Shown in pieces: positions 12,901-34,188 of a stretch of DNA of 34,188 nucleotides. The number at the start of each line of letters is the position of its first letter. Position 1 is the first letter of the stretch. The notes under the pieces are model-generated. The model saw nothing but the letters and a program-made list of their open reading frames with translations. It made no database searches and was not told the DNA's origin. The translations under genes were made by a program, and so were the position numbers. Source of the stretch: Macrostomum lignano (Eukaryota); assembly GCA_002269645.1 (NCBI GenBank), contig NIVC01004822.1, forward strand, positions 1 to 34,188. The letters are read 5' to 3'.

Positions 12901-14671
12901 TTTTGAGTCTGAGTAGTGCCATTGTGTGTCCTGAATAGTGCCATTTTGAGTCTGAGTAGTGCCATTTTGTGTCTGAGTAGTGCCATTTTGTGTCTGAGTA
13001 GTGCCATTTTGTGTCTGAGTAGTGCCATTTTGTGTCTGAGTAGTGCCATTTTGTGTCTGAGTAGTGCCATTTTGTGTCTGAGTAGTGCCATTTTGTGTCT
13101 AAGTAGTGCCATTTTGTGCCTTAGTGGTGGTTCCATTTTGTGTCTGAGTAGTGCCATTTGTATTTAAATAGTACCATTTTGAGTCTGAGTAGTGCCATTT
13201 TTATTTAAATAGTACCATTTTGAGTCTGAGTAGTGCCATTTTTATTTAAATAGTACCATTTTGAGTCTGAGTAGTGCCATTGTGTGTCCTGAATAGTGCC
13301 ATTTTGAGTCTGAGTAGTGCCATTGTGTGTCCTAAATAGTGCCCATTTTGAGTCTGAGTAGTGCCATTGTGTGTCCTGAATAGTGCCCATTTTGAGTCTG
13401 AGTAGTGCCATTTTGTGTCTGAGTAGTGCCATTTTGTGTCTGAGTAGTGCCATTTTGTGTCTGAGTAGTGCCATTTTGAGTCTGAGTAGTGCCATTGTGT
13501 GTCCTGAATAGTGCCATTTTGAGTCTGAGTAGTGCCATTGTGTGTCCTGAATAGTGCCATTTTGAGTCTGAGTAGTGCCGTTTTGTGTCTGAGTAGTGCC
13601 ATTTTGAGTCTGAGTAGTGCCATTGTGTGTCCTGAATAGTGCCATTTTGAGTCTGAGTAGTGCCATTGTGTGTCCTGAATAGTGCCATTTTGAGTCTGAG
13701 TAGTGCAATTGTGTGTCCTGAATAGTGCCATTTTGAGTCTGAGTAGTGCCATTGTGTCCTAAATAGTGCCCATTTTGAGTCTGAGTAGTGCCATTGTGAG
13801 TCTGAGTAGTGCCATTGTGTGTCCTGAATAGTGCCATTTTAAGTCTGAGTAGTGCCATTTGTATTGAAAAGTGCCATTGTCATTCTGTTTACTTCATGTC
13901 AGAATGCTTCCATTCCGAATCCTCCAGAAACGTTTTTTGCCTATGAAAATTAGCTCATTTTTTTATAAATCTTCATATAAAAATCACCCCCACCCCCAGA
14001 TCGTCCTGTTCCTGGCCCTTCGCGCCATTGTTGAAGGCCAATACGAAGCTCCAGCCGAAATTCCCGTTAAAACGATACCTGCAGCTGAGGCAGCCGAACC
14101 AGCTCAGGCTGAAGCTCAAGATGAACCCGAGGCCGCTAATACAATTTCAACCAACTCGGACAGCGATGGTGTCCGGCAGCGAAAGAATGCACCCGCCGCC
14201 GCACCCGCCGCCGCACCCGCCGCCGCAACCGCCGCCGCACCATCTCAGCAGGGCAGAGTGCAGCTTACCATCCGCTACAGCCAGCCGCGCCAATGCCTTG
14301 TAGTGGTGTGCCACCAAGCCGACTTGCCCATAGCAACCGTTGCTACGGACGACTCGAGCTTGGATCCGTACGCTAAGCTCTACATCAAATCCGACAGTCG
14401 AGGCGCTGTGTCTTCAAAGAAGCAGAAGACTAAGACGATGAAAGCTACTAGGAACCCAGTTTATGACGAGTCTTTCGAATTCTCCCTGCCAGAGTCCGAC
14501 TTATCCAGCAGCTCGCTCTGCGTGGCTTTGATGAAGCAGTGCGGCAAACTGATTGGCGGCAAGAACCATCAGATTGGCTTGGCCAGCATTGCACTGGCAG
14601 ATTTGGAGCAGAATGCCGCTACTGTTTGGTACGATTTGAAGACGGCTGCTGGGATGGCTGGCGACGAGTGA
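6923..14671 (+). CDS. ESYT: extended synaptotagmin (TM hairpin-SMP-C2A-C2B-C2C), 775 aa, 7 exons: 6923-7149, 8244-8493, 9469-9876, 10362-10733, 11419-11535, 12037-12318, 14000-14671
   Basis: N-terminal hydrophobic segment; LPSWVFFPDVERAEWLN SMP signature; GVLRFKVVEARDL, KSDPYA and NSLNPVWN C2 motifs; all junctions are GT-AG and phase-compatible (2328 nt total). Confidence 0.95.
7177..8158. repeat. 28-bp minisatellite (GTTGCTGGGCCAGCCTCCCAGATCCTCA)n, ESYT intron 1
   Basis: Visible tandem array; source of ORFs 7170-8209. Confidence 0.95.
8630..9395. repeat. ~31-bp minisatellite (CTGCCTCAAATCCCCCATTATCCTCAATCTA)n, ESYT intron 2
   Basis: Visible tandem array. Confidence 0.93.
9918..10320. repeat. 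42-bp minisatellite (GGGATTATTATCCCATCGGATAATCCTATGTATAGTTTCATG)n, ESYT intron 3
   Basis: Visible tandem array with internal dyad (GGATTAT..ATAATCC); in frame with exon 3 but removed by the AAG|GTGAAA donor at 9877. Confidence 0.93.
10792..11290. repeat. 26-bp purine-rich minisatellite (ATGTAGGGAAGGGAGGCTGAGATGAG)n, ESYT intron 4
   Basis: Visible tandem array. Confidence 0.93.
11605..11900. repeat. degenerate ~30-bp minisatellite (ATGTACACATGGGAATCCCACCCTCCAAA)n, ESYT intron 5
   Basis: Visible tandem array. Confidence 0.85.
12378..13880. repeat. 21-bp minisatellite (TGAGTAGTGCCATTTTGTGTC)n with ~43-bp dimeric higher-order variant, ESYT intron 6
   Basis: Visible tandem array; source of the MALLRHK ORFs. 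Confidence 0.95.
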
Positions 14672-14764
14672 CTGATTGATTGACAAGTGGTTTCTGGACT
14701 CTCGGTATTTCACACCTTTGCTATGCAGGTGCTTTGTTTTTTTAGATTTGTTTTGTTTTCTCAT

Positions 14765-15800
14765 TGGGGTTGGGGATTTGAGCAATCTCTTATTGGGATT
14801 TGGGATTTGAGCATCTCTTATGGGGATTTGGGATTTGAGCATCTCTTATGGGGATTTGGGATTTGAGCATCTCTTATGGAGATTTGGGATTTGAGCATCT
14901 CTTATGGGGATTTGGGATTTGAGCATCTCTTATGGAGATTTGGGATTTGAGCATCTCTTATGGAGATTTGGGATTTGAGCATCTCTTATGGGGATTTGGT
15001 ATGTGAGCATCTCTTATGGAGATTTGGGATTTGAGCATCTCTTATGAGGATTTGGGATTTGAGCATCTCTTATGGAGATTTGGGATTTGAGCATCTCTTA
15101 TGGAGATTTGGGATTTGAGCATCTCTTATGGGGATTTGGGATTTGAGCATCTCTTATGGTGATTTGGGATTTGAGCATCTCTTATGGAGATTTGGGATTT
15201 GAGCATCTCTTATGGGGATTTGGGATTTGAGCATCTCTTATGGAGATTTGGGATTTGAGCAATCTCTTATTGGGATTTGGGATTTGAGCATCTCTTATGG
15301 AGATTTGGGATTTGAGCAATCTCTTATTGGGATTTGGGATTTGAGCATCTCTTATGGGGATTTGGGATTTGAGCATCTCTTAATGGGGATTTGAGCAATC
15401 TCTTGTGAGGATTTAAGCAATCTCTTGTGGGGATTTGAGCAAACTCTTGTGAGGATTTGAGCCAACTCTTATGGGGATGTGAGCAATATCTTGTAGGGAT
15501 TTGAGCAACCTCTTGTGGGGATTTGAGCAATCTCTTGTGAGAACTTGAGCAATCTCTTGTGAGAAATTGAGCAATCTCTTGTGAGAATTTGAGCAATCTC
15601 TTGTGAGAACTTGAGCAATCTCTTGTGAGAAATTGAGCAATCTCTTGTGAGAATTTGAGAAATCTCTTGTGAGAAATTGAGCAATCTCTTGAGGGGATTT
15701 GAGCAAGCTCTTATTGGGATTTGGAATTTGAGCAATCTCTTATGGGGATTTGGAATTTGAGCAATCTTCCGTAGGGATTTTGGGGATTCAAGCGATCTCT
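14765..15800. repeat. 28-bp (GGGATTTGGGATTTGAGCATCTCTTATG)n array grading into a 21-22-bp variant
   Basis: Visible tandem array 3' of the ESYT stop codon. Confidence 0.93.
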
Positions 15801-16671
15801 TTTGGGGGATTTGAGATTTGATCTATGTCTTTTAATCCTATTTCTATCTAAGTTTGTCTCTCTTATTTATCAAAACAGATTATTAAACATTGAATCAGTT
15901 TCCATTAGTGTAAATGAAGCCATTATTTGCCAATTTCTATCATTTTTTTATTATTGACGTTTTTATATGTTCTGTGCTTTGTTTTTCATGCTGATGACAA
16001 TAGAGATTTATGTATCCATTTCTGTCTAAACTACCGTACAAACAGCTAATATATTTTAACTATTTATTTTTATTTTTTCAAGTCGAGTTTCGTTTCGTAA
16101 AGAAGATCATCAGTGGCTTTAATTGCTGTTATTCGTAGCCAAATTTTATTTTTAAAACCAGTTTTTAAAAATTATATTCTACTTTTTGTTCCTCCTATCC
16201 ATCTGCAGCTTACCTTGCCTTGAAAGTTTAATAATTGATTTTTCTATTTTATCTATCTTTGTACAATTTGATATAGTTGTGTACTCAAGTTATTTTGTTT
16301 TGGTGTGCCGAATTTCTATATCAATATTGCTGGCCAAATAAGTTCAATCAGACAGACTGCTCTCCAGCTGTTTCTGTTCCCTTTTTGTATCTCCTTTTTA
16401 TTGTTACTTTTTCTAGTAGTCTTTTTTCTAAATTTAGACTGGCTTCTATTAGCTTCTGCTGGCACTGCTTTTTGCTGCTGTCTTTTGTGTGAAGCAATTT
16501 TACTCTCTCTCGCTAATGAGCACTGTAGTTCACTGTGAACTATTCAATTTAATTGGGTCAGCGTGTTGCCTTGGCTTTTTTATTCTATTGGCATTCGAGT
16601 ACTGCTTGTTGGCTTTGTTGCTTATTGACTTTTTAGCTGGCTGGATAAGATTGAATAAGTGCTATAGGGAT

Positions 16672-17082
16672 GTCTGTCTATGTCTGTCTCAGTGTGTCTC
16701 AGTGTCTGTCTCAGTGTCTGTCTCCGTGTCTGTCTCAGTGTCTGTCTCAGTGTGTCTCAGTGTCTGTCTCAGTGTCTGTCTCAGTGTGTGTCTCCGTGTC
16801 TGTCTCAGTGTCTGTCTCAGTGTCTGTCTCAGTGTGTCTCAGTGTGTCTCAGTGTCTGTCTCAGTGTCTGTCTCAGTGTCTGACTCAGTGTCTGTCTCAG
16901 TGTCTGTCTCAGTGTCTGTCTCAGTGTGTCTCAGTGTCTGTCTCAGTGTCTGTCTCAGTGTCTGACTCAGTGTCTGTCTCAGTGTCTGTCTCAGTGTCTG
17001 TCTCCGTGTCTGACTCAGTGTCTGTCTCCGTGTCTGTCTCAGTGTCTGTCTCAGTGTCTGTCTCCGTGTCTGTCTGTCTGCC

Positions 17083-17121
<39 letters not shown>

Positions 17122-17123
17122 TA

Positions 17124-17154
<31 letters not shown>

Positions 17155-17160
17155 GTCTCT
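16672..17160. repeat. (CTGTCTCAGTGT)n 12-bp repeat and (CTGT)n microsatellite
   Basis: Visible tandem array. Confidence 0.93.
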
Positions 17161-17273
17161 CAGAATTCTAATGTCCTGAAGTCCAAATAGTGTATAGAAT
17201 GCTCACTTGTCATCTGAATTTTTTATCTCTAGATCTACTAGTACTAAAAAATTAACTCTCTGATTGCTTCCAG

Positions 17274-17765
17274 GAGCAGCAAGAGCAGCAGCGGCAGCAG
17301 TCGGACCCGAGCTATGCCGAGCGCCTCGGCCGCATCGAGCTGACCCTCCGCTACAGCCCGGCCCGGCAGAGCCTGGTGCTGGCCTGCCACCGGGTGCAGC
17401 TGCTGCCGCAGACAGCGGGCCCCACCGTAGACACAAATCTCTGCAATCCCTACGTAAAATTCTCCATAGAAGCAGCGGAATCTTCTGCTTATGCTAATCA
17501 GCAATCCAAGAAGCAGAGCAAGCGCACCGGTACAGCGCGCTCCACTCTCACGCCTGTGTTCGATGAGTCGTTTGATTTTCAAGTGAACGAAATTGAATTG
17601 TCTTATCGTTACCTGCGGGTTCGAGTGCTGCATAGGAAACCGAAGAGCAAGAGCATTCTGCCTGGCCCGGCGGCGCGTCTTAGTCGGGGCGTGTTGCTGG
17701 GCTCGGCTCGAATCTCTCTGGCTGATTTTGAGCACAACTCCACTGCTTGGTACGAGTTAGGGTGA
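17274..17765 (+). CDS. orphan terminal exon encoding a second ESYT-type C2C domain (paralog of ESYT exon 7)
   Basis: TTCCAG| phase-0 acceptor; LGRIELTLRYSPARQSLVLACH..NPYVKF..TPVFDESFDF..LGSARISLADFEHNSTAWYEL parallels exon 7 GRVQLTIRYSQPRQCLVVVCH..DPYAKL..NPVYDESFEF..IGLASIALADLEQNAATVWYDL; AATAAA at 17836-17841. No ATG of its own. Confidence 0.8.
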   Translation, partial: EQQEQQRQQSDPSYAERLGRIELTLRYSPARQSLVLACHRVQLLPQTAGPTVDTNLCNPYVKFSIEAAESSAYANQQSKKQSKRTGTARSTLTPVFDESFDFQVNEIELSYRYLRVRVLHRKPKSKSILPGPAARLSRGVLLGSARISLADFEHNSTAWYELG

Positions 17766-17884
17766 CAGCGTGTACTTTTAATTGGCTTTTGAAGTAAACG
17801 GTTTTTTAACATGATTTCAAAAATTAAAGTTGTGCAATAAATTATTCTGCAATCAGTTCATTAATTAATCAATCAGTTACTTTT

Positions 17885-18440
17885 TGGCGCCTCCCCCACC
17901 CCATATTTGGCGCCTCTCACACCCCCATATTTGGCGCCTCTCACATCCCTATTTTTGGTGCCTCTCACACCCCCTTTTTGGTGCCTCTCAATCCCCCTAT
18001 TCGGCGCCTCTCACACCCCTTATTTGGCGCCTCTCACACCCCCATATTTGGCGCCTCACACCCCCATATTTGGCGCCTCTCACACCCCCATATTTGGCGC
18101 CTCTCACACCCCTCTATTCGGCGCCTCTCACACCCCTCTATTCGGCGCCTCTCACACCCCTCTATTCGGCGCCTCTCACACCCCTCTATTCGGCACCTCT
18201 CATTCCCTATTTGGCGCCTCTCACACCCCTCTATTTGGCGCCTCTCACACCCCTCTATTCGGCGCCTCTCATTCTCTATTTGGCGCCTCTCACACCCCTC
18301 TATTCGGCGCCTCTCACCCCTCTATTCGGCGCCTCTCACACCCCTCTATTCGGCGCCTCTCACACCCCTCTATTCGGCGCCTCTCACACCCCTATATTCG
18401 GCGCCTCTCATTCCCTATTTGGCGCCTCCCATGGCCTTTT
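17885..18440. repeat. 24-bp minisatellite (TTCGGCGCCTCTCACACCCCTCTA)n
   Basis: Visible tandem array. Confidence 0.93.
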
Positions 18441-18811
18441 TGGCGCTTCTCACACCTTCTCACACCTTTTTGTTGGCTCTAAAATCCATTCGATTCCCTA
18501 GTAGCGGAGTTCCTCTTCATCACTACTTCGCAAACTTCTTCAGGTGCTGTGATTTTAATAATAAATCAATTTTTTAAGTTTATTTTAGTGAGTATTTTAC
18601 GGTATGTGCTGCGAAATACAAACTTTACTAGTCTGCAGAGATCTTTGTTTTGCAATATATGATCCAACAAATAAATGCTTTTGTCTTACTATTCAACAGT
18701 ACTAAAGTTCGAGTTAGTTTGAGTTCTTTAAAAATAATTGGCTGTTTTATAAGTAACTCGTATGTAATTACTCAAGATTTTTGCAGAATTTTGACACTCG
18801 TAGCTACTCGT

Positions 18812-19275: not shown

Positions 19276-22200
19276 ATGGACGTCAGGCAGCTCAGGCAGT
19301 TGGAATTTCCCCAACTAAACGATTATGTCTATCTGGATCATGCAGGCGCCACTCTCTATTCGGAGAGGCAGCTGACCAGGGTGATGCAGGAGCTGCAGTC
19401 GGGGTTATATGGCAATCCGCATACTCAGGTAACGTCTGTTTAACTTGGCTCTTGGATTTACTCTCTCTCCGTCTTTCCTTTCTTTACACTGTCTTCCTGC
19501 ATGTTTGTCTCCCATCATTCATCCCTTCATCTCCTCTATCCCTCCCTTCATCTCCCCTATCCCTCGCTCCATCTCCTATATTCCTCCCTTCATATCCTCT
19601 ATCCCTCCCTTCATCTCCTCTATTCCTCCCTTCATCTCCTCTATCCCTCCCTTCATATCCTCTATCCCTCCCTTCATCTCCTCTATTCCTCCCTTCATCT
19701 CCTCTATCCCTCCCTTCATATCCTCTATCCCTCCCTTCATCTCCTATATCCCTCCCTTCATCTCCTATATCCCTCCCTTCACCTCCTCTATTCCTCCCTT
19801 CATCTCCTCTAGGCTCTATCCCTCCCTTCATACCTCCTATCCCTCCTATCCCATATCTGTCTCCTCTCCCTCCCTGCATCTCGCCAGGCCCGCAAAAGTG
19901 CTCACACCAGTCGCCTAGTTGAGGAGGCTCGCAACTCTGTGCTGAAACATTTCAACACCAGCAACCAGCAGCATGCTGTCATTTTCACATCCGGCGCCAC
20001 GGCTGCAGTGAAAATTTTAGCCGAGAGTTTCCAAGCAGGCCAGCACGGCGCTGGTTTGTTTAATTATTTATTAGACTCGCACACCTCTATTGTTGGCATG
20101 CGGGAAGTGCTCCGGTCCAGAGGATTCGTTGTGAGGTGCAGCAGGACTGAGCTGGAGCTGGAATCAGCTACTAGCAGTAGTAGTGACGGTCGCGTTCTGT
20201 TTGCCCTGCCTGCTCAGTGCAATTTCTCCGGCAGGAAACTGGATTTAAGCATTGTGGACCGATTGAAAGCCAATAATAAAGACGCGTACGTGCTGCTGGA
20301 TGCTGCATCATTTGCCGCCACCTGTCCATTGGATCTGACAGCTTGTTCGGCTGATTTTGTCTGCTTATCGTTTTATAAAATGTTTGGCTACCCTACGGGC
20401 CTCGGAGCTCTCATTGTGCGGCTGGATAGAGTGGCCAATGGTGAATCGGTGCTTAAGAAGGCCTACTTTGGCGGTGGTACCGTGCAGGTGAAGCAAAATT
20501 GTTTTTACTTTTCTGCACTTGTTTATCATCAGTGAATCTCTTATGATGAAACATAAATAGCTAATTGAGGTTATTAGGCACTGCTATTAACTGCTTTTAG
20601 CAACTGGCCCTCAAGAGACCCACATGAATCGTCCGCAAAAATCGCCCTCAAAAATCGCCCTTAAGAATCGCCCCCAATAATCGCCCGCAAGAATCGCCCT
20701 GAAGAATCGCTCGCCTTTAAGAATCGCCCCCAAGAATCGCCCTCAAGAATCGCCCTCAAGAATCGCCCTCAAGAGTCGCCCTCAAGAATCGCCCACAAGA
20801 ATCGCCCTCAAGAATCGCCCGCAAGAATCGCCCACAAGAATCGCCCTCAAGAGTCGCCCTCAAGAATCGCCCTCAAGAATCGCCCTCAAGAATCGCCCTC
20901 AAGAATCGCCCCCAAGAATTGCCCTCAAGAATCGCCCTCAAGAATCGTCCCCAAAAATCGCCCTTAAAAATCGCCCTCAAGAATCGCCCTCAAGAATCAC
21001 CCACAAGAATCGCCCTCAAGAATTGCCCTCAAGAATCGTCCCCAAAAATCCCCCTTAAGAATCGCCCCCAATAATCGCCCTTAAGAATCGTCCCCAATAA
21101 TCGCCCTCAAGAATCGCCCTTAAGAATCGTCCCCAAAAATCGCCCTTAAGAATCGTCCCCAAAAATCGCCCTTAAGAATCGTCCCCAATAATCGCCCTCA
21201 AGAATCGCCCTAAAGAATCGCCTTTAAGAATCGCCCTCAAGAATCGTCCCCAAAAATCGCCCTTAAGAATCGCACCCAATAATCGCCCCTAAGAATCGCC
21301 TTTAAGAATCGCTTTTATTGAATATTAATCGCTTCCTTCCCCCTATAATCACCCACAAGAATCGCCCTGAATCGCCCCATAGAATCGCCTTTAAGTATCG
21401 ATTTTATAAATCGCCCTCAAGAATCGCCAAAAATGTTAGACCTACAAAGAAAGACTCTCTGAAATCGGTGGCAGGCGATGGTCCCATCCGGCTCGTTCGT
21501 CCAGCAGTCGCCGGACCTTGCCGCCGGTTTCGAAGACGGCACCATAAACTATCTGAGCATCCTAGCAGTGCGTCACGGCTTATGGGCTCTCGAACAGCTT
21601 GGCGGCGGGATGCAGCAGATCAGTCAGCGAGTCTTTCGCCTGGCCCAGTACTTGGCCCGGCGTTTAAGCGAGCTGCGCCACTCTGACGGCTCCCCTGTTT
21701 GCCTGCTGTACACCGATAATGACTATACGGACTGGACTAAGCAGGGCGGCATTGTGGCTTTCAATTTAGTGCGCTGCGATGGTAGCTTTGTTGGCTATTC
21801 GGATCTGAGCTCCAGGGCTGAAAACTATCGGATACAGGTGCGATTATTGCTGTTACTTTTAAGTCAGGTCAGTCAGTCAGTCAGTCAGTCAGTCAGTCAG
21901 TCAGTCAGTCAGTCAGTCAGTCAGTCAGTCAGTCAGTCAGTCAGTCAGTCAGTCAGTCAGTCAGTCAGTCAGTCAGTCAGTCAGTCAGTCAGTCAGTCAG
22001 TCAGTCAGTCAGTCAGTCAGTCAGTCAGTCAGTCAGTCAGTCAGTCAGTCAGTCAGTCAGTCAGTCAGTCAGTCAGTCAGTCAGTCAGTCAGTCAGTCAG
22101 TCAGTCAGTCAGCCACCCTGACCCCTATAAAATGGCCCTTCCCCACCCCAACCCTACTCGCCAAAGCTCCGAGTGGGCTGCTTCTGCAACGTGGGCGCCT

Positions 22201-23472
22201 GCCAGCGCTACCTGGACATCACGGACGAACAGCTGTTGGCTAATCTTCGCGCCGGCCACGTGTGCGGCGACGGTGTCGATCTAGTCGACGGCCGACCTAC
22301 CGGCGCTGTCCGAGCCTCATTTGGCTACATGTCGGACGAATCCGACGCCGACGCTCTGGTTGCTATGGTAACGGACAATTTTGTAATAACAAAACCTATG
22401 CCGGTATTTTCGGTTGCGGCGCGTCGGCGCCTTTGATGTCAATGTCCCGAGACGAGCTGGCCAACCTGTGCCGCGGCGGCCAATCAGCAGCGTCAAAGGC
22501 GGCCGCGGAGTCGCACTGGCCCCATTTGGGCCGCATATTTCTCTATCCTGTGAAATCTTGCGCCGCCTTTGAAGTTGCCGCTAGTTGGCCCGTAGATCGG
22601 CGCGGCTTTCATCTTGACCGGCACTGGATGGTTGTAAACGAGTCCGGCTTGTGTCTGACTATGAAACGGGAGCCGCGGCTTAGTCAGGTGATTTATGACG
22701 ATTTTTGTTGCTGTCGTTAATTCTCTTTGTTTAGCCAATTAACCACACACTAGCTAGCCTCCTTATGTGCCTAAGAATCGCCCCTTGACCACCCCATTAT
22801 AAAACCGCCACTCCACCACCCCAATATAACCCCCTTCTCAACTACCCCATTATAAAACCGCCACTCCACCACCCCAATATAACCCCCTTCTCAACTACCC
22901 CATTATAAAATCGCCCCTCAACCACTATAAAATCGCCCCTCAACCACTATAAAATCGCCCCTCAGCCACTGTAAAATCGCCCCTCAACCACTATAAAATC
23001 GCCCCTCAACCACTATAAAATCGCCCCTCAGCCACTATAAAATCGCCCCTCAACCCCCATTATAAATCGCCCCTCAGCCACTATAAAATTGCCCCTCAAC
23101 CATGCTAAAATTGCCCCTTAAACTAGTATAAAATCGCCACTCAACCATTTCAAAGATGGTCGCCAACCCGGATATCAATGGTGCACCCTATTCCTCGTTA
23201 CTCTAGATCCGACCCTTCCTGGACCTTCAACGCCGGCTGCTGATTCTGAACTCGCCCATCAGCGATCAAAATGCGGTTGTCCCAATGGACGCCGGGCACC
23301 AGACTGCCGCTCTCTGCCTGCACAGCCGCGTCTGCGGCAGTCGCGTCCGCCTGCTGGACTGCGGGCAGGCCGCGGCCGACTGGCTCCACAGCGTTGTTGG
23401 GTATCCGTGCCGGCTGGTGCGGCAGGACGGCGACCGGCTGGCCAAGACTGGGGAGCAGGTAAGTGTCCGCTG

Positions 23473-23519
<47 letters not shown>

Positions 23520-23524
23520 CTGTC

Positions 23525-23586
<62 letters not shown>

Positions 23587-24544
23587 ACTAAGCTCAGCCA
23601 GAAACCCCTCCCCAACCAGGCCATATCCCTAGCCAACGAGCAGCAGTTCCTGCTGTTAAACGAGGCCAGTGTCGCCCACCTGTTGGACTGCATCGGTCCA
23701 GAGAGCCCGCTGGACCTGTCCCAGCTGGTGGCCAGATTTCGGGCCAACCTGGTGGTTCGGGGTTGCCAGCCAATGTCCGAGGAGTCCTGGACTCGACTGA
23801 GCATCGGCGGTAGGCAGTTTGCCGCTCACGGAGTCTGCACTCGGTAGGTCTGAGAGATTCTTAGGTGAAGGAGCTTCGAAAAAGGTTGAAGCCAACTAGG
23901 TTTATTGAAGGTAAAAGTTAAGTTAATTACAGAGAAGGTCAAGGGCAACTAAAGTACACAAACTTCAAGATCAGCTAAGACACGGAGAAGATCAAGATTA
24001 ACTGAGAGGTCATGGTCAGCTAAGTAAAAGGTACAGAAAAGGTCAGCTAGGGTACAAATAAGGTCATGTTTAATTAAACTACAAAGAAGGTCAAGGTCAA
24101 GTAAGTTACACAGAAAAGGTCAAGCAAGGTCAGCTAAGCTACAGAAAAAGTCAAGCAAGGTCAACTAAGCTACAGAAAAGGTCAAGCAAGGTCAACTAAG
24201 GTACATTGTACGTCAACTCGATGGTCAAGTAAGATACAAAGAAGGTCAAGCTCAAGTAGGCTTCAGAGTAGGTCCAGGTCAACTAAGACTAGGAACTTGA
24301 ACTAAATATTTGAAAAGCCTAGATAATAAACATTTATCCTCCGCAATGTCAACCCAGCTGCGACATGATTGGCATCGACCAGGACACTGGCGAGTCTACA
24401 ATCGAACCCATGCGCACCCTGTCCCAGATGAAAGGCGGTGCGTTGAAATTCGGTCTGTACGTGTCCGCCACTGCCAGTGATAATACTACTGATAAGACGG
24501 CCAAATTTGAGCTTTCTGTTGGTGATGCTGTTATTGCCGAATGA
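19276..24544 (+). CDS. MOCOS: molybdenum cofactor sulfurase (NifS-like PLP domain + MOSC); exons 19276-19428, 19888-20487, 21475-21837, 22167-22687 (-1 frameshift or cryptic intron at ~22400-22436), 23207-23458, 23593/23602-23843, 24358-24544
   Basis: YLDHAGATLYS, YGNPH, VIFTSGATAA, SFYKMFGYPTGLGAL (PLP lysine), FEDGTINYL, LRVGCFCNVGAC, IFLYPVKSC, SLANEQQFLL, RFRANLVV, CTRCDMIGIDQDTG; GT-AG junctions; AATAAA at 24730. Confidence 0.93.
19520..19860. repeat. 21-bp pyrimidine-rich minisatellite (CCTCCCTTCATCTCCTCTATC)n, MOCOS intron 1
   Basis: Visible tandem array. Confidence 0.92.
20630..21425. repeat. 13-bp minisatellite (AAGAATCGCCCTC)n, MOCOS intron 2
   Basis: Visible tandem array. Confidence 0.94.
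21864..22112. repeat. (TCAG)n microsatellite, ~60 copies, MOCOS intron 3
   Basis: Perfect tetranucleotide array. Confidence 0.97.
22765..23150. repeat. ~22-bp minisatellite (AAAATCGCCCCTCAACCACTAT)n, MOCOS intron 4
   Basis: Visible tandem array sharing the AATCGCCC core with intron 2. Confidence 0.88.
23471..23586. repeat. (CTGT)n microsatellite, MOCOS intron 5
   Basis: Visible array. Confidence 0.95.
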
Positions 24545-25369: not shown

Positions 25370-28300
25370 ATGCAGCAAAACTCCAGCCAAGAATGCTACA
25401 ACTGTCCTGCTGCCAGCATAGCAACAGATCTATTCGTATGCGGCCTATGCTCAGTTAGCTTTCACGAGCTGGGCCAGTTTCTGGCGCACAGGAATTCCAA
25501 CTGCTTGGCCGCGACCGGCAATGCCGGCTGCAACTACGCGGCCGCGTCATCGACCACTGCTGGCAGGTTTCTGACTCACCTGCAGCAGGTTGAGCCGCCG
25601 CCTAACCATCAGTCCCCAGCCGCCTGCCTGAGCCAGGGCTACAGTGCTCCGCCAACTGCCGTTGTTGTTGCCACGGATGACTTTGTTGGCCAGCAGAGTC
25701 TGCCGTTTTTACCTGCCGATGCTGGTCCAACGGTGAGGAAGTACTTGATGTACTGTTTTCTTTTTAGGAAGTGTTGGGAACAACTAGCAACCGATTAGAA
25801 AGTTTCATCACTTGACTCCACACCAACCAAATAATTAATTTGAATACCGCCCGGAGTCGAACCAGTCCTTCTGCTTATCAGAGCGGCGTTATTGGCCACT
25901 AATTGGACCTCCCCTAAGTTTAAATCGAATCAAATTGACATATATATAAGCTGTTGAAGCCCGCGACTTTTGAAGTCATACTGAAACAAAAACGTGTTAA
26001 TAGTTTGCATTGAAGTTTGAAAAATTTGAGTAAATTCTTGTTAAATTAGGATTTGAGGCAAGCATTGATCTCATCGGCTGGGGTGCTGCGCAGAATGAGT
26101 CTGTTTAAACAATGTGTGGGCAAACTCTGGTCTCTGCCTCTTTCTCCGTCCTGATCTGGTTCTTTGAAACTTATCTCCTCTCTCCTCTTTCCTCTCTCCT
26201 TTCTTTTCTCATCCCATATATCATCTCCTCTCTCCTCTCTTATCCCTTTTCTTTTTTATTTCATCTCTCCTGTCTTATCTCCTCTCTCTTCTCTCTTCTC
26301 TCTGCTCGCTTATCTCTACTCTCTCCTCTCTTCCCTCCCCTTTTCTCTCTTCTCTCTTCTCACTGTTACTCTCTCTTCTCGTATATATATATTTTATTAC
26401 ACCTGCCCTAATGGCCGCAGCCTTTGCTGTTCAGTCCAAGCACTGGGGGGTCGCCACACACAGCCTCAATTGCCCCAGCTAATGCTGGTGCCCATTTTAC
26501 AGCTGGGTGAACTGAAGCAATGCAGAGTTAAGTGTCTTGCTCAAGGACACAAATTGTTCCAGTCCAGTATTGGATTCAAGAATCGAACCCCCGACCTCCT
26601 TGCCAGCAGTCCGACACTCTAACCACTAGGCTACAACCCCCATTTACATATTGAACCATTGCCAATCATTTTAAAGGCCTATTCAAACGGCATGGCGGAT
26701 CCAACTGCAAGTCACCAGCAGCAGCACCAGCCTCAGTCAACTGTCACAGTGCCCAATTGCGGCTACTTTGATCCTGCAGCTTTGACACCTGCCAACAATC
26801 AGCACGTGCATCAGCAGGTGCCTCATCAGAACCCGATGGTTCAACAAATGCAATCAGAGGATGAGCAGCATCAGTCAGCTTTGCCATTAACTGCTCTTCT
26901 CTCTGAGGCATCAGTGGTCATTGATAGTACAGGTGCTTCATCAGTTGCAGTACCAGACTCTGCAGCCTCCAATTGCTTTCATCATCCACCTGTCAATCAG
27001 CAGCAGCAATATGAAGATTGCACTCATCAGCAGTATTCTAACAGCTACGCAGATCCTTATAATCTGCAGCAGCAGCAGCAGCAGAATTATGAGTTGTACG
27101 CGGCCAATACTACTTGTCAGCAGCATCAGCAGTATCAGCATGATCAGTCGCAAATGTTTGCAGAAAATCACGCGGTCAATTCTTATTATAGTTATCAGCA
27201 GCAAGCGGCAGTGGGTCATCAAGGTCATCAGGGTCATCAAGGTCATCAGGGTCATCAAGGTCATCAAGGTCATCAAGGTCATCAGGGTCATCAAGGTCAT
27301 CAGGGTCATCAAGGTCATCAGGGTCATCAGGGTCATCAAGGTAATCAGGATCATCAAGGTCATCAAGGTCATCAGGGTCATCAAGGTCATCAGGATCACC
27401 AGGGTCATCAAGGTCATCAGGGTCATCAGTCGTCTTTTATCCAGCAACCGCAGCCAGCACCTGCTGCAATGATGTCGGAACAAGTTTTAGCACCTTCTTC
27501 TTCGTTAGCCAGTGCTAACAGACAATCGCGAACAGGCGGCGAACAAAGAAACGATAATCAACGCTCCAAAGTGACGTTGCTACGTTCAACTGACAGGCCG
27601 CAGATGTTTCCTTGCACAGTGTGCAACTTTGTGTGCAAATATCAGAATCAGCTGACCCTGCACATGAGAAAGCATACGGGTTGACTTACTTGACTTAGCT
27701 GCAGGGCGGTCCGAAGACGCAGCGGGGAGGCGAGCGTCGCCCATTCCGCTAATCCCTGAAAGACCCGCATAGGCTAGGGCGCGGGGCCGGTCAGGGAGGT
27801 CTGCCGGTCCTGTCTGCAGCGTTGTCTTCGGTGGGGAAGACGGAGGCTCGCTTGGTGGCCCGGAGGAACCGGATGAGCCGTGGGATGTTCTCGGGCCGGC
27901 AAACGTCGTCCAGGGACGGGTTGGGCCCGAGGTGGTTGAGCCGGTCTCGGTTGAAGGCCGGGCAGTAGCAGACGAAGTGCATGGCATCTTCATTCTCGAG
28001 GCTGCAGAAGGGGCAGAGTTCACTCCGGCGAACACATCGGAGGAAGCAGTGCCTGGCAAAGCAACCGTGACCTGTGAAGGTCATAGTGAGAGCGCGGATA
28101 TCTTTTCGATTTTGATTCAAAAGGATTCTCCGCAGCTTGAGGGACGGATTGGGCACTGCCGCACGAGATTGGCGGCAGTTGGAGATACCATCCCATCTGC
28201 GCAAGTGCAGGATGTCCGCCCAGTCGTTAATCTGACGATTAATGACTGTGGCGGGGATGGGGGCCAGGGGCACGGGGCCAAGGGGCGAGCCGGAACAGCC

Positions 28301-31300
28301 CGCCTTAGCGAGGGAGTCGGCGAGCTCGTTACCTTTGAAGCCGGCGTGTCCTGGGATCCACGTGAGCCGGACGGTGTTCCTCCGAGCCAGCTTGTTGAGC
28401 TGCCCGATACAGTCGCGGACTGTTCGGGAGTTCGTAGTGGTGTGACACAGGGCCTGTAAAGCGGCCTGGCTGTCAGAGTGGAAGAAGATTCTTCTGTCCT
28501 TGAAGTCCTTGCGGTGGAGCTCAGCTGCACAGGAGCTGATGGCAAGGACTTCATTCTGGAAGACGCTGGAGAGTCTGCCAGTGTGTTGGGCGTGAGTAGC
28601 AATCACGCGGCCGTTGATAAGGATGCAGACTCCAAAGCCGGATAAACCGTCTTTGGAGGATCCGTCAGTGAAGCAGTGAACCTCCTGATGGGCCCAGCTG
28701 TCGTTGGCGTTCTCCCTGGAGGGGATCGTGACCTTGAAGCGTTGGTAGAGGTTGAGGGAGCGCGGTTCAGCGTCCGAAAGGACAGCCGCACTCCCACTCT
28801 CCTCCAGAACTTTAAGGCACAGGTCAGAGTGCGGCAGGAGCTTGCGCTTCGCCATCGCTCTTTGTGGCTTGAAGCTAACACCAGCCTCGATGAGCCGGCG
28901 GGTGGTTTTAGCAGCCTCGCGACGGACAAAGATGTCCAGAGGCGGGAGGCAGAGAAAGGCGTTGAGGCCGTCAAAGGGAGCAGAGAGCGGGGCATTCAGG
29001 ATCATGCGGCACGCACGTCCCTGCACCTTTTTGAGGGCTTCGTGGCAGGTTTTAATCTGCAAGGCGCTGGTCCAGACCAGGCCGGCGTATGTAACGGCCG
29101 GTCGGACCATTGCGGTATAGATCCACCAGAGACGCTTTGGGGTGAGGCCCCAGGTGGTGCCGACGGCTCTGCGCAGCTGCGCAAGAATCGCGAGGGCTTT
29201 TTTGGTTTTGGCCTGGACGTGGGTGGACCAGCTCAGCCGGTGGTCCAGCGTAACGCCGAGACACTTGGTTTGCTTGCAGGATGGAATTTCCACTCCGTAA
29301 AGCTTTAGTGGGCGAATACGCCAGTTTACCCTGCTGGTGAACATGATCGCGACAGTTTTGGTCTCGGAGAGCCTGAGGCCGCACCTGTCCGCCCAACGTT
29401 CAGCAGAGCGAATGAAGTTTTGCAAAAGATCTCTAAGGGTTTCAGGTGACGGTCCGGATGCCACGGCTGTGACATCATCGGCGTAACCGACCTTGAGGAT
29501 GGGGTCAAGATGGCTGTCCTGGAGGAGCTCATCGATGACCATGTTCCAGAGAACTGGAGAGAGGACACCGCCCTGGGGGCTGCCTTTGCAGACGGTTACC
29601 GTCCGTTGGTGGCCCAACAGGTGTGCGGTGGCAGTACGGTGGCTGATCATATACATGATCCACCGGGTGAGGTGCGAGTGGGTTCCTCTAGCACGTAGAG
29701 CTCTGTCAAAGGCCTCAAAGAGGACATTATCGAAGGCTCCAACAATGTCGAGGAAGACAGCGAGAGCGTAGCCATTACCAAGAACGGCTTTCTCCAGCAT
29801 GTCAACCAGAACGTGAAGCGCGCTCTCCGTGGACCTGCCTGCCCGAAAGGCATGCTGGTTCTCACTGAGCGGCTTGTTCTTCAGTTCCACAGAGAGGAGG
29901 CGCCAGAGCACCAGTCTCTCTAACAGCTTCACCAATGAGGAGGTGAGGCTAATTGGTCTGAAGGATTTAATGGACCGGTAGTCCGGTCGGCCAGGCTTGG
30001 GGATAAAGACCACCTTGGCCTCGGTCCAGGATTTCGGAACAAAGCCGAGCACAATGCAGGCTTTCAGAAGCCGGCAAAGGTTCCGCAGGAAACCGGTGCA
30101 TTTCACCGCCTCCCGCAGGAAGGCTGGCACAACGCCGTCCGGTCCTGGGGATTTGAAGGGTTTGAAGGAGGAGACAGCTTTAGTAACGCGGTCCTCCGTG
30201 ATGATTGAGTCAGCCAGTACGTGTCCGCCCACTGAGTGGTCAGGGGGGCCGGGCCTAGCTGGCTCGTTCGGGAAAAACGCTGTTAGCATCGCTTCCAGTG
30301 TTTCTCCTGGGTTCTCAGTGAGCGAGCCGTCGGCTCTCTTGACTGAGGAGAGTTTGGACATTTTGTCCAGGGTGAGGGCTTTAACGATTCTGGAGGTGGG
30401 GCGGGAGCCCTCAAGTTCCTCACAGTATTCGCGCCACTTGTTGGTTTTGGCGTTCCTAACCTGCCTCTTGAACTCGTGGATAGAGTTCAGGTAGGCGGTT
30501 TGGTCGGCCGGGTTTTTAGTTTTTTGGGCCCTGCGGTGAAGCCTTTTGGCTCTGCGACGGAGGTCGCCAAGCTGCGGGTTCCACCATGGGCCGACTGTTT
30601 GCCTTTATATGCCTTTAGTGGGCATGAGGCTTCGAAGGCAGCAGTGAGCGAGTCCGTAAGTGCGGCCGCAAATTCATCTGCTTCTTCGCAGGTGTTGATG
30701 GAGACTGGAGCGCTAGTGCAACGATAGGTCTCCTCCAGGGCAAGCCTGAAGGCGGTCCAGTCGGTATTCCTAGCATTCCGTTTCCAGTAAAGCTGGCCTG
30801 CGTTACGGGCGCTGGCCAGCGTGAAAGAGATGAACTTGTGATCGGAGAGGGACGCCTCAGGAAGCACCCGCCATTCCCTAGTGCTCTGGAAGAGCCTGGG
30901 CGTGGCGAGGGTGGCATCCAGCACCTCCGATCGGCGTCCGTTATTGAAGGTAGGGGTACTACCCGAGTTACAGAACTCAAGGGTTGTAGTAGCAATATAA
31001 GCCAGGAAGTCTTCACCTCTCTGGTTTATATCAGAACTGCCCCAGTGGGTGTGGTGGGCATTGATGTCACCTGCCACGAGCAGCTCATAGTTTCTGGTGG
31101 AGCAGAGCTCGACCAGTGTGACAAGCTCTACTGGGATCATCTCGCCGTCGCCCGGTAGGTAAACCGAGGCGATGAGGGTAGTCCTCCCAGGGAGTATGTC
31201 TTCAGACTGGATGACACAGATGTCCCTGGTGGACAGGTCTGATCTGAGCCATGCGTTAATAGAACTGGACACCATGATGCAGGATCTTGGTGCCAGGTTT

Positions 31301-34188
31301 CCCTCCCGGGTACCAGCGGTTAAACACTGGTAGCCGGTGGGGACATGTTGGGGGCTGCCCCTAAGCGTCCAAGGTTCCTGGATAAGGATAATCCCTGGCA
31401 CGTATTGGTCAGTGTGCTTCAAGAGGTTGACTGAAGCAGCAATGCTGTGCTGCAGGTTGACCTGCAAGCAGTGGATGCCCTGGGAGACAGTCATGTCTAC
31501 TGTCCAGGGGAGGAGAAAAGCAACTCATTCTCAGCCTCATCGGTGAGAGTTGAGTCGCCAATTTCCATTGGCTCAGGCTCAGCCGCCTCCCCAGCCGCCG
31601 CGGAGGCGGACACGGCGCCCACGGCAGGTGAGTCACCTAGCCGCGCTACACCGCCCTCCTCCCCAGCGACTGGGGTACGGCTGCTGCCTTCGCCTTGCGC
31701 CCCGCCGTCGGGAGTCTGAGCTCGGCCGGCAGCGTCCTCCTGGTGGTAATCCCACCAGTTGGAAGGCTGAGCCGTGCCGTCGTCCAGTTCCCTCGGCTGG
31801 CTTTCAGTGTTTTTTCGAGCGGCACGAGTCTGCTCGAGGTGAAGTCTCAGAGACTGAGCTTCGTCAAGTGCGCGCTGGATTAGACCGGACCGCCGGCTAC
31901 TGCGGGCGGGTCTACGTCCGCGCGAGGCGGACTCAGCAGCGCGAATAGCCTTGTTAGGCTCGGGATCGGGTTGCTGCTGCCGCTTGGCCGGCGGGGCATG
32001 AGCCCCAGCTCCGGGAGCGGCGCGCTTCCCGTCTTTCTTGGTCTCCACCTTGCCCTCCTCACAGCGGAGGATGGTCAGTTGATGGAGACCAAGGTGGAGG
32101 TTTGTGCCGTGCGGTAGCCGCTTGGCCCATCCCTCCGTCAGGCCGAGGATGACTGTGGCCCCGGTCGTGCCCTTGCGGACCGTGCTGTGGTACACAAGAC
32201 CACTGGCGTCGAGATCCGGGTGCCGCTTGAGCAGGAGCTGCCGCAGCTGCTCCCCGGACTTGATTGCACTGTCGGCCGGGACCCAAATCCGATGGCGGAT
32301 GGTCTTCGGCCGCTCGCTCTCCAAGGCGAAGGTCAGCTGGCCCAGGTCGCTGTGCCAGTCGAACTTGGGCAGCTGATCCCGCAGGAGCTGGGTGCTCTCC
32401 TCGGATTTGCACCACAGTAGGATGCACCCGTTCGCCTTGGTGGACTTGACGATGTCCACGAAGACGCCCTCCAGGGTTAGATTGAGCAAGCCCTCGTCGA
32501 TGGTACGCCACGCGACGTCGAGCTGCTCGGGCGTCAGGTCGAAATCCCCGCCGAGGATCATCACGGCGGGTTGCAGCGGCTGCTTGACCTTGGACGCGTA
32601 GGACTCGGAGGTCTTGAGCGGGGCCGCTTTGTCTTTGGAAGGCGGTAGGCCGGCAGGGTTGCCCCCCTGAGAGCCCGAGGACACGGCGGTTCCTGACGGC
32701 CCAGCCGCGCCACCGGACTCCCCAGAGGGCCTCCCCGCTGCGGTGGCTCCCGAAGGCCTCACCGCGGCTTGCGTGCCCTCCTCAGACGCAGCAGCAGCCC
32801 GCTTCTCCTGCCGCTTACGGTTGCGGCGGATGTTCCGCTGTCGTCGAGACTCGGCCGTGCGCGGTCGGCTAGACTGGCGGCCAGGGTGATCGGCGGCAGC
32901 GTCAGCTGGCCCGGTTGGACCAGGTTGGGCGTTGGTGCTACCAGTGGTAGCTACCGGAGCGGCTGATCCCGGTGAGCCAGAGGCGACCGGGTCAGTTTCT
33001 TTAGGGATGGTGGCGTTAGTGGCCATAGCTGAAAAGCGGGGAGGGCTACTCGTTATGCGAGTTGAGTACCCGACTGGCCGACACCTCAAGCCAGCCGGTT
33101 TGAAAAAAGGACCGCTAGCGACCGGACTACTCCCCGGCCTTCCAGCCCATCGGCACGGTCAAACACCTTAGGCATTAGAGGGTACGTTAAGCAGTACCAC
33201 GGCCTGCAGGCTGGTGAGCCAGACCCGCATACCCAAATTCGGCCGAAGCCACTGGATAGGGTCGCCAGCGCCGGAGCCCAGTCTGTCCAGCAGCCCTAGG
33301 GTCTGCCTTGAACACACGCGGGGACGAGTACCCCTGGGTCGACTTGCGAGACAGCGTGGGGGAGTCTGCGGCTGCCAGAGGCAAATAGAGGGTGCAGACC
33401 TCCCACCAGCCTTGACCTGCTGAAGATGGGGGCAGGCGTGAAGCATCGCAGACCTTAGCTCGTAGGCCTAGTCTGTCTCATACTTCACTGGCATGCTGAA
33501 TACGCCTTCGCGTGCAGCATACGGGTTAGTTTTGCCATTATACTACTCGATTTTTTGTTTATAAGTAGCGTAGTATCTGGTATGAATAACATGATTTTCG
33601 ATACATATCGGCCAAAGAACACTTGTAGAGAATTCTTAAGATAGTTTATTTTCCAAAAAATCCGGTATATTTTTTATATTATTTTCGATACATATCGGGT
33701 GTTAATTTTCATTTAATAGTTTAGTTTGGTTTATGAAATTATTTTTAGTAAAAAACATAAGATTGCTAAATTTGCTGTTCACACTACTTGATAACTTGTC
33801 CTTGTAAGTAGTTTAGTTTGAATATATGTTTTATAAATATGTATCGAATATATGCTTTTCGATACATATCGGCTATTTATTGCTATCAACCTTTATTGTC
33901 CGCAGGCGAGAAGCCATTCCAATGCGCTATTTGCGGTCGGTCTTTCTCATTGAAGCACAACGTTCGCAAGCACATGAACTCGCACAGGATCTGGCCCGCA
34001 GCGACACAGCGCCCCCGCCTGCTGCTACATCTTCATCTCCAGCTCCCGCTGAGGCTGCTGCACCGAATTCGGCATCTGCTGGTCAGCCTTCGACTGTTGT
34101 CGACACCGCGTCGGGTGTCGAGGCAGCAACCGGTCAATCGTCGTTGCTATGGCAACAGAGTCGACTCGCCAAGTGTTCCAGCCGACGC
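25370..34188 (+). CDS. ZNF341: ZNF341-like C2H2 zinc-finger gene (partial); exons 25370-25732, 26677-27679, 33906 to window end; intron 2 interrupted by the LINE
   Basis: N-terminal [26 protein letters not shown] finger. The spliced join gives HMRKHTG|[30 protein letters not shown], matching from memory human ZNF341 [33 protein letters not shown]. Splice phases 0 and 1 are compatible. Confidence 0.8.
26393..26640 (-). mobile_element. tRNA-derived CORE-type SINE, copy 2 (ZNF341 intron 1)
   Basis: A box (fwd 26623-26633), B box (fwd 26580-26589), CORE-like segment; aligns by eye with 18812-19129. Confidence 0.85.
27214..27429 (+). repeat. coding 9-bp repeat (GGTCATCAR)x24 = (GHQ)24 in ZNF341 exon 2
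   Basis: 216 nt, in frame, 24 tripeptide units (variants GNQ, DHQ). Confidence 0.95.
27791..31494 (-). CDS. LINE ORF2 pol (APE endonuclease, reverse transcriptase, RNase H, C-terminal CCHC), ~1234 aa, split by one 1-nt deletion at ~30588-30590
   Basis: APE: [32 protein letters not shown]: [18 protein letters not shown]. RNase H: [38 protein letters not shown]8-H-X4-C. Adding one C (GCCCATGG to GCCCCATGG) restores the typical PWWN motif and joins ORFs 30487-31494 and 27791-30361. Confidence 0.93.
31497..33026 (-). CDS. LINE ORF1 (gag-like, 509 aa from ATG 33026; central DUF4780-like region)
   Basis: Long ORF immediately upstream of ORF2, with a basic N-terminal stretch, SYASKVK, and [20 protein letters not shown] resembling LOA-clade ORF1 (recognised by eye); no CCHC knuckle seen. 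Confidence 0.85.
   Translation of the reverse strand: MATNATIPKETDPVASGSPGSAAPVATTGSTNAQPGPTGPADAAADHPGRQSSRPRTAESRRQRNIRRNRKRQEKRAAAASEEGTQAAVRPSGATAAGRPSGESGGAAGPSGTAVSSGSQGGNPAGLPPSKDKAAPLKTSESYASKVKQPLQPAVMILGGDFDLTPEQLDVAWRTIDEGLLNLTLEGVFVDIVKSTKANGCILLWCKSEESTQLLRDQLPKFDWHSDLGQLTFALESERPKTIRHRIWVPADSAIKSGEQLRQLLLKRHPDLDASGLVYHSTVRKGTTGATVILGLTEGWAKRLPHGTNLHLGLHQLTILRCEEGKVETKKDGKRAAPGAGAHAPPAKRQQQPDPEPNKAIRAAESASRGRRPARSSRRSGLIQRALDEAQSLRLHLEQTRAARKNTESQPRELDDGTAQPSNWWDYHQEDAAGRAQTPDGGAQGEGSSRTPVAGEEGGVARLGDSPAVGAVSASAAAGEAAEPEPMEIGDSTLTDEAENELLFSSPGQ
33277..33515 (-). ncRNA. HDV-like (delta-like) self-cleaving ribozyme forming the exact 5' end of the LINE
   Basis: P1 GCACGCG (33515-33509)/CGCGUGU (33320-33314) with G1.U wobble; P2 CCCAG (33338-33334)/CUGGG (33281-33277); P3 GGG/CCC; L3 UACUCGU; P1.1 AC/GU; P4 GGCAG..CUGCU; J4/2 C-A-G-A (catalytic C at 33285). 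Predicted cleavage site coincides with the TSD boundary. Confidence 0.88.

Follow-up and report, generated by a model that had tools for sequence, protein, structure and literature searches.

What happens to a zinc-finger gene when a retrotransposon integrates into one of its 5' splice sites, and did the element choose that site or merely arrive there? Contig NIVC01004822.1 of Macrostomum lignano raises this question in a stretch of 34,188 nt (the window, i.e., the whole stretch of DNA that was analyzed), in which a C2H2 zinc-finger gene is interrupted at the end of its second exon by a LINE. We consider it probable that the LINE entered the donor of intron 2 by target-primed reverse transcription, in antisense orientation to the gene, that its landing there was a matter of chance, and that the result is a null or strongly hypomorphic allele.

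The gene is encoded on the plus strand, and the parts of it that frame the insertion are as follows:

25370 to 25732, plus strand: exon 1 of the gene, opening at an ATG, 121 codons, phase 0
26677 to 27679, plus strand: exon 2, 1003 nt, phase 1 at its end
33525 to 33905, plus strand: original intron 2, 381 nt
33906 to 34188, plus strand: exon 3, with the linker (G)EKP, finger 2 and RIWP, continuing beyond the window end

This gene model follows from the donor of exon 1 (ACG/GTGAGG), the acceptor of exon 2, the phases, and the continuity of HTG/EKP across the junction 27679-33906. Exon 1 encodes one isolated finger, C-x2-C-x12-H-x5-C. The protein encoded by exon 2 is rich in Q and H, includes a 9-nt coding repeat, (HQG)n, at 27214-27428, and closes with C2H2 finger 1 followed by TG, G27679 being the last exon nucleotide. 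When this G is joined to GC GAG AAG CCA at 33906, the HTG/EKP linker is restored and the second finger follows. The original intron is AT-rich, contains TTCGATACATATCGG three times and ends in the acceptor ccgcag/G at 33905/33906; with the insert, intron 2 runs from 27680 to 33905 and measures 6,226 nt, versus 381 nt when uninterrupted. Exon 3 contributes 283 nt inside the window, in which just one finger downstream of the insert is visible. Its frame is ambiguous past about position 33998, after finger 2, where codon usage did not discriminate; either assembly homopolymer errors or another lesion in this gene copy could account for the ambiguity.

The original prediction called the gene ZNF341, a name that we retain as a lead only. 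Searched with the gene as query, a word-indexed protein collection returned generic C2H2 matches of at most 46% identity over at most 25% of the query, and a full HMMER scan returned 80,560 matches dominated by poly-ZNF proteins. The top indexed match (P0001) was discarded as a candidate ortholog because it lies in an unrelated compact genome. The layout of vertebrate ZNF341, in which a lone finger near the N-terminus precedes a pair linked by TGEKP, with H-R-I-W-P after finger 2, would fit the gene. Exact-protein look-up of the window's ZNF ORF, RT ORF and ORF1 retrieved no record, and Rfam and tRNA scans of the whole window gave zero matches. Nearby in the window lies a MOCOS-like exon, whose best match is 52% identical and which has no named close relative.

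The insertion point is delimited by a target-site duplication (TSD) on either side of the element:

27671 to 27682, unstranded: left TSD copy, AGCATACGGGTT, made up of the last 9 exon nucleotides and intron positions +1 to +3; the primer side of reverse transcription
33516 to 33527, unstranded: right TSD copy, AGCATACGGGTT, an exact repeat of the left copy
27683 to 33515, minus strand: full-length LINE, 5,833 bp, antisense to the gene

That the TSD spans the exon/intron junction, as originally predicted, is borne out by this exact 12-nt repeat and by the position of G27679. Both copies directly adjoin the insert ends, at a repeat spacing of 5845, and AGCATACGGGTT has no further copies on either strand of the window. 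An exact 12-mer pair alone is not rare in this stretch, and two other exact 12-nt pairs (D8 and D9) lie inside the same 6.2 kb. The chance of a 12-mer match at the first and last base of the element, in a single register, is about 4^-12 = 6e-8; because the two copies adjoin precisely the outermost bases of a LINE, and a relative supports the ends of that LINE, the TSD is not a chance repeat. Without the insert, the empty site would be expected to read ...GAGAAAGCATACGGGTTAGTTTTGCC....

Between the two copies of the duplication, the element comprises, in its own 5' to 3' order:

33027 to 33515, minus strand: LINE 5'UTR, 489 nt, aligned without gaps to the start of the relative L002
31497 to 33026, minus strand: LINE ORF1, 509 aa from the first ATG, intact
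27791 to 31494, minus strand: LINE ORF2, conceptually about 1234 aa, in two frames owing to a single 1-nt loss
30829 to 31464, minus strand: APE-type endonuclease (Exo_endo_phos_2; Pfam 4e-21)
29246 to 30004, minus strand: reverse transcriptase (RVT_1; Pfam 1e-34)
28295 to 28687, minus strand: RNase H (RNase_H; 1e-12)
27962 to 28015, minus strand: C-terminal CCHC motif in the ORF2 translation
27683 to 27790, minus strand: LINE 3'UTR, 108 nt, without poly(A)

The insert has a G+C content of 60%, versus 41-48% in the flanks. Its identification as a LINE, already made in the original prediction, is upheld by the order of its domains and by matches to solved structures: the endonuclease (EN) is nearest to that of TRAS1 (5.8e-11) and then R1Bm, with no L1 EN above threshold, and the reverse transcriptase (RT) matches R2 and L1 ORF2p about equally. 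The arrangement is that of an APE-type LINE, with EN followed by RT, a TSD, a 3' end conserved in a relative and no terminal repeats; a search of the insert for LTRs and TIRs found none, only short internal chance repeats. The ATG of ORF2 lies 2 nt past the ORF1 stop. ORF1 contains three Cys in total, has no Pfam match and no C-x2-C-x4-H-x4-C knuckle, and is 36% identical to the ORF1 of L002. The 3'UTR shares with L002 a block that runs TTAGCGGAATGGGCG...CCGCTGC...CCCTGCAGCTAAGTCAA, and the tail of the insert, TAAGTCAA-G-TAAGTC(AA), has one GTAAGTC(AA) unit more than that of L002. A candidate 3'UTR hairpin was rejected, its predicted stem being no stabler than those of shuffled sequences (z = 0.11), as was a minisatellite at 23.9-24.3 kb with a tail-like motif as a partner SINE, the core motif occurring at chance level.

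In public data, the most similar proteins are intact ORF2s of 1232-1235 aa from two Logan assemblies (64% and 60% identical); among named entries, the closest are unclassified LINE fragments inside Macrostomum lignano gene models, at up to 75%. These relatives (L002/P0008 from Logan ERR14788467, P0009, and P0010 and P0011 from Macrostomum lignano) have the same ORF1-ORF2 layout, with ORF2 60-75% identical. The lineage of L002/P0008 has a 5' leader block and a 3' terminal block in common with the window copy, but by nucleotide sequence it forms a separate family, and the window copy differs in its extra tail unit and its frameshifted ORF2. At the 3' end, L002 runs through the common terminal block, ...CCCTGCAGCTAAGTCAA, and then into unrelated sequence. 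At the 5' end, the two sequences align from the base next to the TSD onward, ungapped for about 110 columns; this is consistent with the 5' boundary rather than proof of it, since the L002 contig begins at the same base. The relative also bears on the length of the duplication. The last two bases of the TSD (TT on the plus strand, AA in the sense of the element) may derive from the LINE RNA and, as the terminus of L002 reads ...TAAGTCAA, the true duplication would be 10-12 nt; the LINE may then also have supplied the T in the GT that survives.

In its classification the insert stands close to R1/TRAS-type and I-type LINEs, with which it shares an EN nearest to those of TRAS1 and R1Bm, an RNase H after the RT, a C-terminal CCHC motif and a 3' end built of a short tandem unit instead of poly(A). 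It differs from them in its ORF1, which carries neither CCHC knuckles nor any recognizable domain. The RNase H and the C-terminal CCHC are features of the I clade, as ORF1 knuckles are; because ORF1 lacks these, we do not assign the element to the I clade sensu stricto. The TSD of the Drosophila I factor is 10-14 bp long, a range that includes 10-12 nt. A literature search on how such flatworm LINEs are classified yielded nothing useful. Scanning metagenomes for a 3'UTR pattern of two anchors gave no match, and neither did scans, guided by protein sequence, of contigs from metagenomes and prokaryote genomes. Judged from its sequence, the insert belongs to an uncharacterized LINE lineage and is full-length.

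The copy also appears to have inserted recently. Its coding capacity is interrupted at one place:

30588 to 30590, minus strand: ORF2 frameshift site, a C-run (GGG on the plus strand) one base too short

The lesion lies in the context TCG GC.CCA TGG TGG, between KGKQS and PWWNPQLG, so that by the measure of both ORFs being intact the copy has an intact ORF1 and an ORF2 with one 1-nt loss. This loss could be a real lesion or an assembly homopolymer error. Long-read assemblers also introduce 1-nt C-run losses of this kind. The frameshift apart, the 5,232 coding nt contain zero nonsense codons; given that 3.15% of possible substitutions create stops, this absence bounds neutral divergence at no more than 1.8% (95%), whereas the TSD alone gives a bound of no more than 12.5%. 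The full length of the element, its perfect TSD and 5.2 kb of coding sequence free of nonsense codons support a young copy, and with ORF1 intact, the duplication exact and divergence so bounded, the young insertion claimed in the original prediction stands.

The consequence of the insertion for the gene lies in the exchange of its splice donor. The relevant sites were scored with a generic metazoan 5' splice-site matrix whose frequencies are approximate, as are all scores derived from it, and were ranked as percentiles over all GTs in the window:

27677 to 27685, plus strand: junction after insertion, CGG/GTTGAC; -1.33 bits, 4/9 U1 matches, 54th percentile
33522 to 33530, plus strand: original donor, CGG/GTTAGT; 6.26 bits, 7/9 U1 matches, 96.7th percentile
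27682 to 27684, plus strand: read-through stop TGA, in frame after ...LHMRKHTG

The breakpoint falls after intron positions +1 to +3, inside the 9-nt consensus of the 5' splice site. The original donor, whose GTTAGT occupies 33525-33530, now lies 5.8 kb from its exon, and the exon is left with G/GTTGAC, just as the donor swap had been described. Positions +4A/+5G/+6T are replaced by G/A/C, an approximate drop of 7.6 bits by this generic matrix, and at the damaged site positions -2 and +3 to +6 are all non-consensus. Splice-site scoring, which had been proposed as a check, thus agrees with the predicted damage: exon 2 now abuts a donor whose quality is no better than that of a random GT. As a local yardstick, the five real donors in the window (those of three MOCOS introns called by homology and two ZNF donors) score 6.3-9.0 bits. 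Three of the five lack +5G, and the genome may therefore be tolerant of weak intronic donor positions, although each of these three carries the exonic CAG, which is missing from the damaged site.

The in-frame TGA that directly follows HTG had been put forward as a further consequence of the insertion. The stop is present at 27682-27684, but the insertion did not create the truncation, for the original intron reads GGT TAG, with its TAG at 33527-33529 in the same codon as the TGA, and read-through of the empty allele stopped after HTG too. Since the uninterrupted intron also opened with an in-frame stop, the prediction of a null or hypomorphic allele depends on the donor and not on the TGA.

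With the donor so reduced, most transcripts of the insertion allele would be expected to fail in joining exon 2 to exon 3. Read-through into the LINE would meet the TGA immediately and give a 455-aa product with finger 1 only. Skipping of exon 2 would remove 1003 nt and shift the frame, so that translation would stop 16 codons into exon 3. Splicing might also draw on cryptic sites of the antisense element, leading to pseudo-exon capture; the face of the element on the gene strand presents 14 acceptor-like sites and strong donors, for example CAG/GTGAGT at 31627 with 12.4 bits on the approximate scale. The retained GT would possibly permit a small residue of correct splicing. Rescue by a clean, introner-like excision was considered and rejected, as the ...GTGCAG/CATACGG that the end of the element forms together with the TSD would, if used, leave a 7-nt insertion and hence a frameshift. 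Because every aberrant route would lose finger 2 and all that lies downstream of it, a null or strongly hypomorphic allele is a reasonable prediction.

The strongest alternative, which we nevertheless regard as unlikely, is that the insertion is tolerated and near-neutral, either because enough 27679-33906 splicing proceeds through the remaining G/GT with the help of exon 2 enhancers or because a second allele or a paralogue covers the loss. The GT is indeed kept at the junction, it has no competing donor close by (the nearest plausible GT downstream of the exon 2 end is about 680 nt away), and three of the five local donors are themselves weak at +5/+6. The gene strand of the insert contains no AATAAA or ATTAAA, so that there is no obvious premature polyadenylation, and introns generally tolerate antisense insertions better than sense insertions (PMC6466679). 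Set against this, the site retains only four of nine U1 matches, lies 7.6 bits under the original on the approximate scale and falls below every real donor in the window; the intron has grown from 381 to 6,226 nt and has gained many cryptic sites; and in precedents with insertions at or near splice sites the transcripts were aberrant (PMC6466679). The balance favors strong loss of function from the damaged donor.

Such precedents place the allele in a known class of mutation. The nearest is the mouse T^Wis allele, in which an antisense ETn occupies the exon 7 splice donor of Brachyury and gives rise to eight aberrant transcripts (PMC6466679, Table 2), among them products of exon skipping and transcripts that include element sequence (PMC6466679). 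As in the present case, the retroelement lies within the 5' splice site and is antisense to the gene; T^Wis differs in that its element is an LTR retroelement and not a LINE and in that its effect has been demonstrated experimentally in the mouse whereas the effect here is predicted. A further difference is the minimal GT that the TSD restores here to the end of the exon. In Spta1^sph-Dem, exon skipping results from an IAP that lies at an intron/exon junction of the Spta1 gene (PMC6466679). A full-length antisense L1 in an intron of Glrb (Glrb^spa) reduces normal transcript and causes exon skipping (PMC6466679), and many disease alleles due to L1, Alu or SVA are entered as 'I/Splicing' in a human compilation (PMC4859970). 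Glrb^spa and the human L1/Alu alleles resemble the present allele in having a full-length or nearly full-length LINE in the gene, but their insertions lie within introns and off the consensus, whereas here positions +4 to +6 are removed directly; the present element also belongs to another LINE lineage, has an RNase H and lacks poly(A). The allele is thus a new instance of a known mutation class, produced by an undescribed LINE family; the mechanism is not new.

As to how the element arrived, target-primed reverse transcription is the established model of LINE integration, and the junctions can be read in its terms. The endonuclease would have nicked the coding strand of the gene 1-3 nt into the intron, at ...ACGGG(TT)^AGTTTT. 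The cDNA strand would then be the plus strand of the window, its primer ...ACGGGTT-3' ending at 27682. The freed ...GGGTT-3' would have base-paired with the last two bases, AA, of the LINE RNA (...UAAGUCAA-3') and primed the cDNA; as the relatives end in ...GTCAA, the TT/AA pairing would amount to a 2-nt microhomology. A second nick on the other strand, at 27670/27671 and 10-12 nt away, would have generated the duplication AGCATACGGG(TT).

The landing in a donor is most simply explained by chance and not by targeting. That the LINE family is selective for a donor-like motif or for the codons of the H-T-G linker is very improbable in our estimation, although two observations point that way: the target, ...GTT-3', and the RNA end, ...CAA-3', share a microhomology of 2 nt, and the EN is nearest to the endonucleases of the site-specific TRAS1 and R1 elements. 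Two-base microhomology is common among non-specific LINEs. The original prediction had asked whether other copies of the family also lie at donors or HTGEKP codons, and the answer from the single other 3' junction, that of L002, goes against it, for the flank is unrelated (AGTGACCTTGAC versus CCCGTATGCTTT) and in this one junction the lineage departs from R1/TRAS-type elements in showing no site specificity; as L002 is one distant relative (64%), this evidence is weak either way, and there may be a looser preference. The 34-kb window holds no second copy of the element. Slighter still is the prospect that the lineage, with its RNA end ...GUCAA, recurrently hits DNA that resembles 5' splice sites or encodes H-T-G(EKP) linkers; if it did, it would be a systematic mutagen of the zinc-finger genes or donors of its host. 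That the LINE was placed here by a mis-join of repeat-containing reads is scarcely credible: two apparent 1-nt C-run losses, in the LINE ORF2 and possibly in exon 3, do hint at an error-prone assembly, but a mis-join does not duplicate 12 nt of unique host sequence without error and set the copies directly against the two true ends of a full-length element.

A chance integration by target-primed reverse transcription into the donor of intron 2 is therefore the reading that we prefer. Whether the bare GT was regenerated by the duplication or by the terminal AA of the LINE, its presence at the exon end makes the choice between hypomorph and null an empirical question. If the prediction is true, a non-model invertebrate would carry a natural loss-of-function or strongly hypomorphic allele of a transcription-factor gene with multiple fingers, and if in addition the insertion is polymorphic, it would constitute a ready-made mutant. 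Produced by a LINE family that was active very recently, the allele would then also serve as a marker of ongoing retrotransposition.

Two reading frames compete for the part of exon 3 that follows finger 2 of the zinc-finger gene, and both remain open up to the window end. Beyond finger 2 (…SHRIWP), over ~33995-34188 (+), the zinc-finger frame encodes an Arg/Leu-rich peptide with an out-of-frame look, and the +2 frame over the same stretch encodes an Ala/Ser/Pro/Thr-rich peptide that resembles the remainder of the zinc-finger protein. Codon usage after finger 2 (-3.0 vs -0.3 bits) leaves the two frames inseparable. The frames would be joined if a single base had been lost in either CCC (33995-33997) or C5 (34012-34016). 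The frameshift in ORF2 of the LINE (30588-30590) and this possible frameshift in exon 3 (33995-34016) would each amount to the loss of 1 nt in a C-run, a pattern suggestive of homopolymers called too short in the assembly. If the C-run loss is indeed such an under-call, the ORF2 of the LINE, read here in two frames, may in reality be intact.

At the insertion itself (33503-33530, +), the 5' end of the LINE and the target-site duplication form an acceptor-like …CGCCTTCGCGTGCAG|CATACGG immediately upstream of the original donor, and together these two sites could delimit a potential 7-nt micro-exon, the use of which would still leave the frame shifted. Within the 381-nt original intron 2, TTCGATACATATCGG is present in three exact copies (33597-33611, 33684-33698 and 33858-33872, +), two of them contained in a 21-nt repeat, and has no further copies elsewhere in the window, against a chance expectation of 0.03. 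This imperfect palindrome, CGATA-CA-TATCG, may serve as a regulatory motif of the intron or may be what is left of a repeat.

In exon 2 (27214-27428, +), an in-frame 9-nt repeat, GGTCATCAA, occurs in ~24 copies and codes for (HQG)n; the Pfam 'Collagen' match in this exon is a spurious product of that repeat. Intron 1 holds stretches (25830-25900 and 26400-26640) that by eye are tRNA-related or CORE-SINE (MIR-like), for example …cccattttacagctgggtgaactgaagca…ggattcaagaatcgaaccc…; ARAGORN and Rfam scans returned no match for them.

The zinc-finger gene has two neighbors on the same strand. One (~9469-17765, +) has exons with a C2 domain and looks by eye extended-synaptotagmin-like; the other (~19282-23847, +) is molybdenum cofactor sulfurase-like:

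19282-19428, ~19890-20487 and ~21478-21837, +, exons
near 23590-23847, +, MOSC-like end

Nearly all introns and intergenic stretches of the window carry a long minisatellite (21-31-nt period) or tetranucleotide array, as in the following examples:

72-728, 7177-8158, 8632-9391, 10789-11289, 12383-13878, 14765-15723, 17883-18456 and 20626-21312, minisatellite or array stretches
21862-22112, tetranucleotide array (AGTC)62
23473-23586, tetranucleotide array (TGTC)29

Across the whole window, TRF reported 29 rows with a score of at least 150, and the genome is unusually rich in tandem repeats. Units of AAGGTCAAG/CTAAGCTACAG form a degenerate array (23900-24290, +) with a superficial likeness to the 3' tail of the LINE; the core common to array and tail occurs at chance frequency (2 found vs 2.55 expected).

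Sequences of the LINE lineage also appear in other M. lignano gene models. Several of the UniRef entries with ORF2 similarity (P0010, P0017, P0020, P0038 and P0120) join host domains, namely LRR, fibrinogen and ABC transporter, to ORF2 fragments of this lineage, and these fusions are probably annotation chimeras due to intragenic LINE copies.
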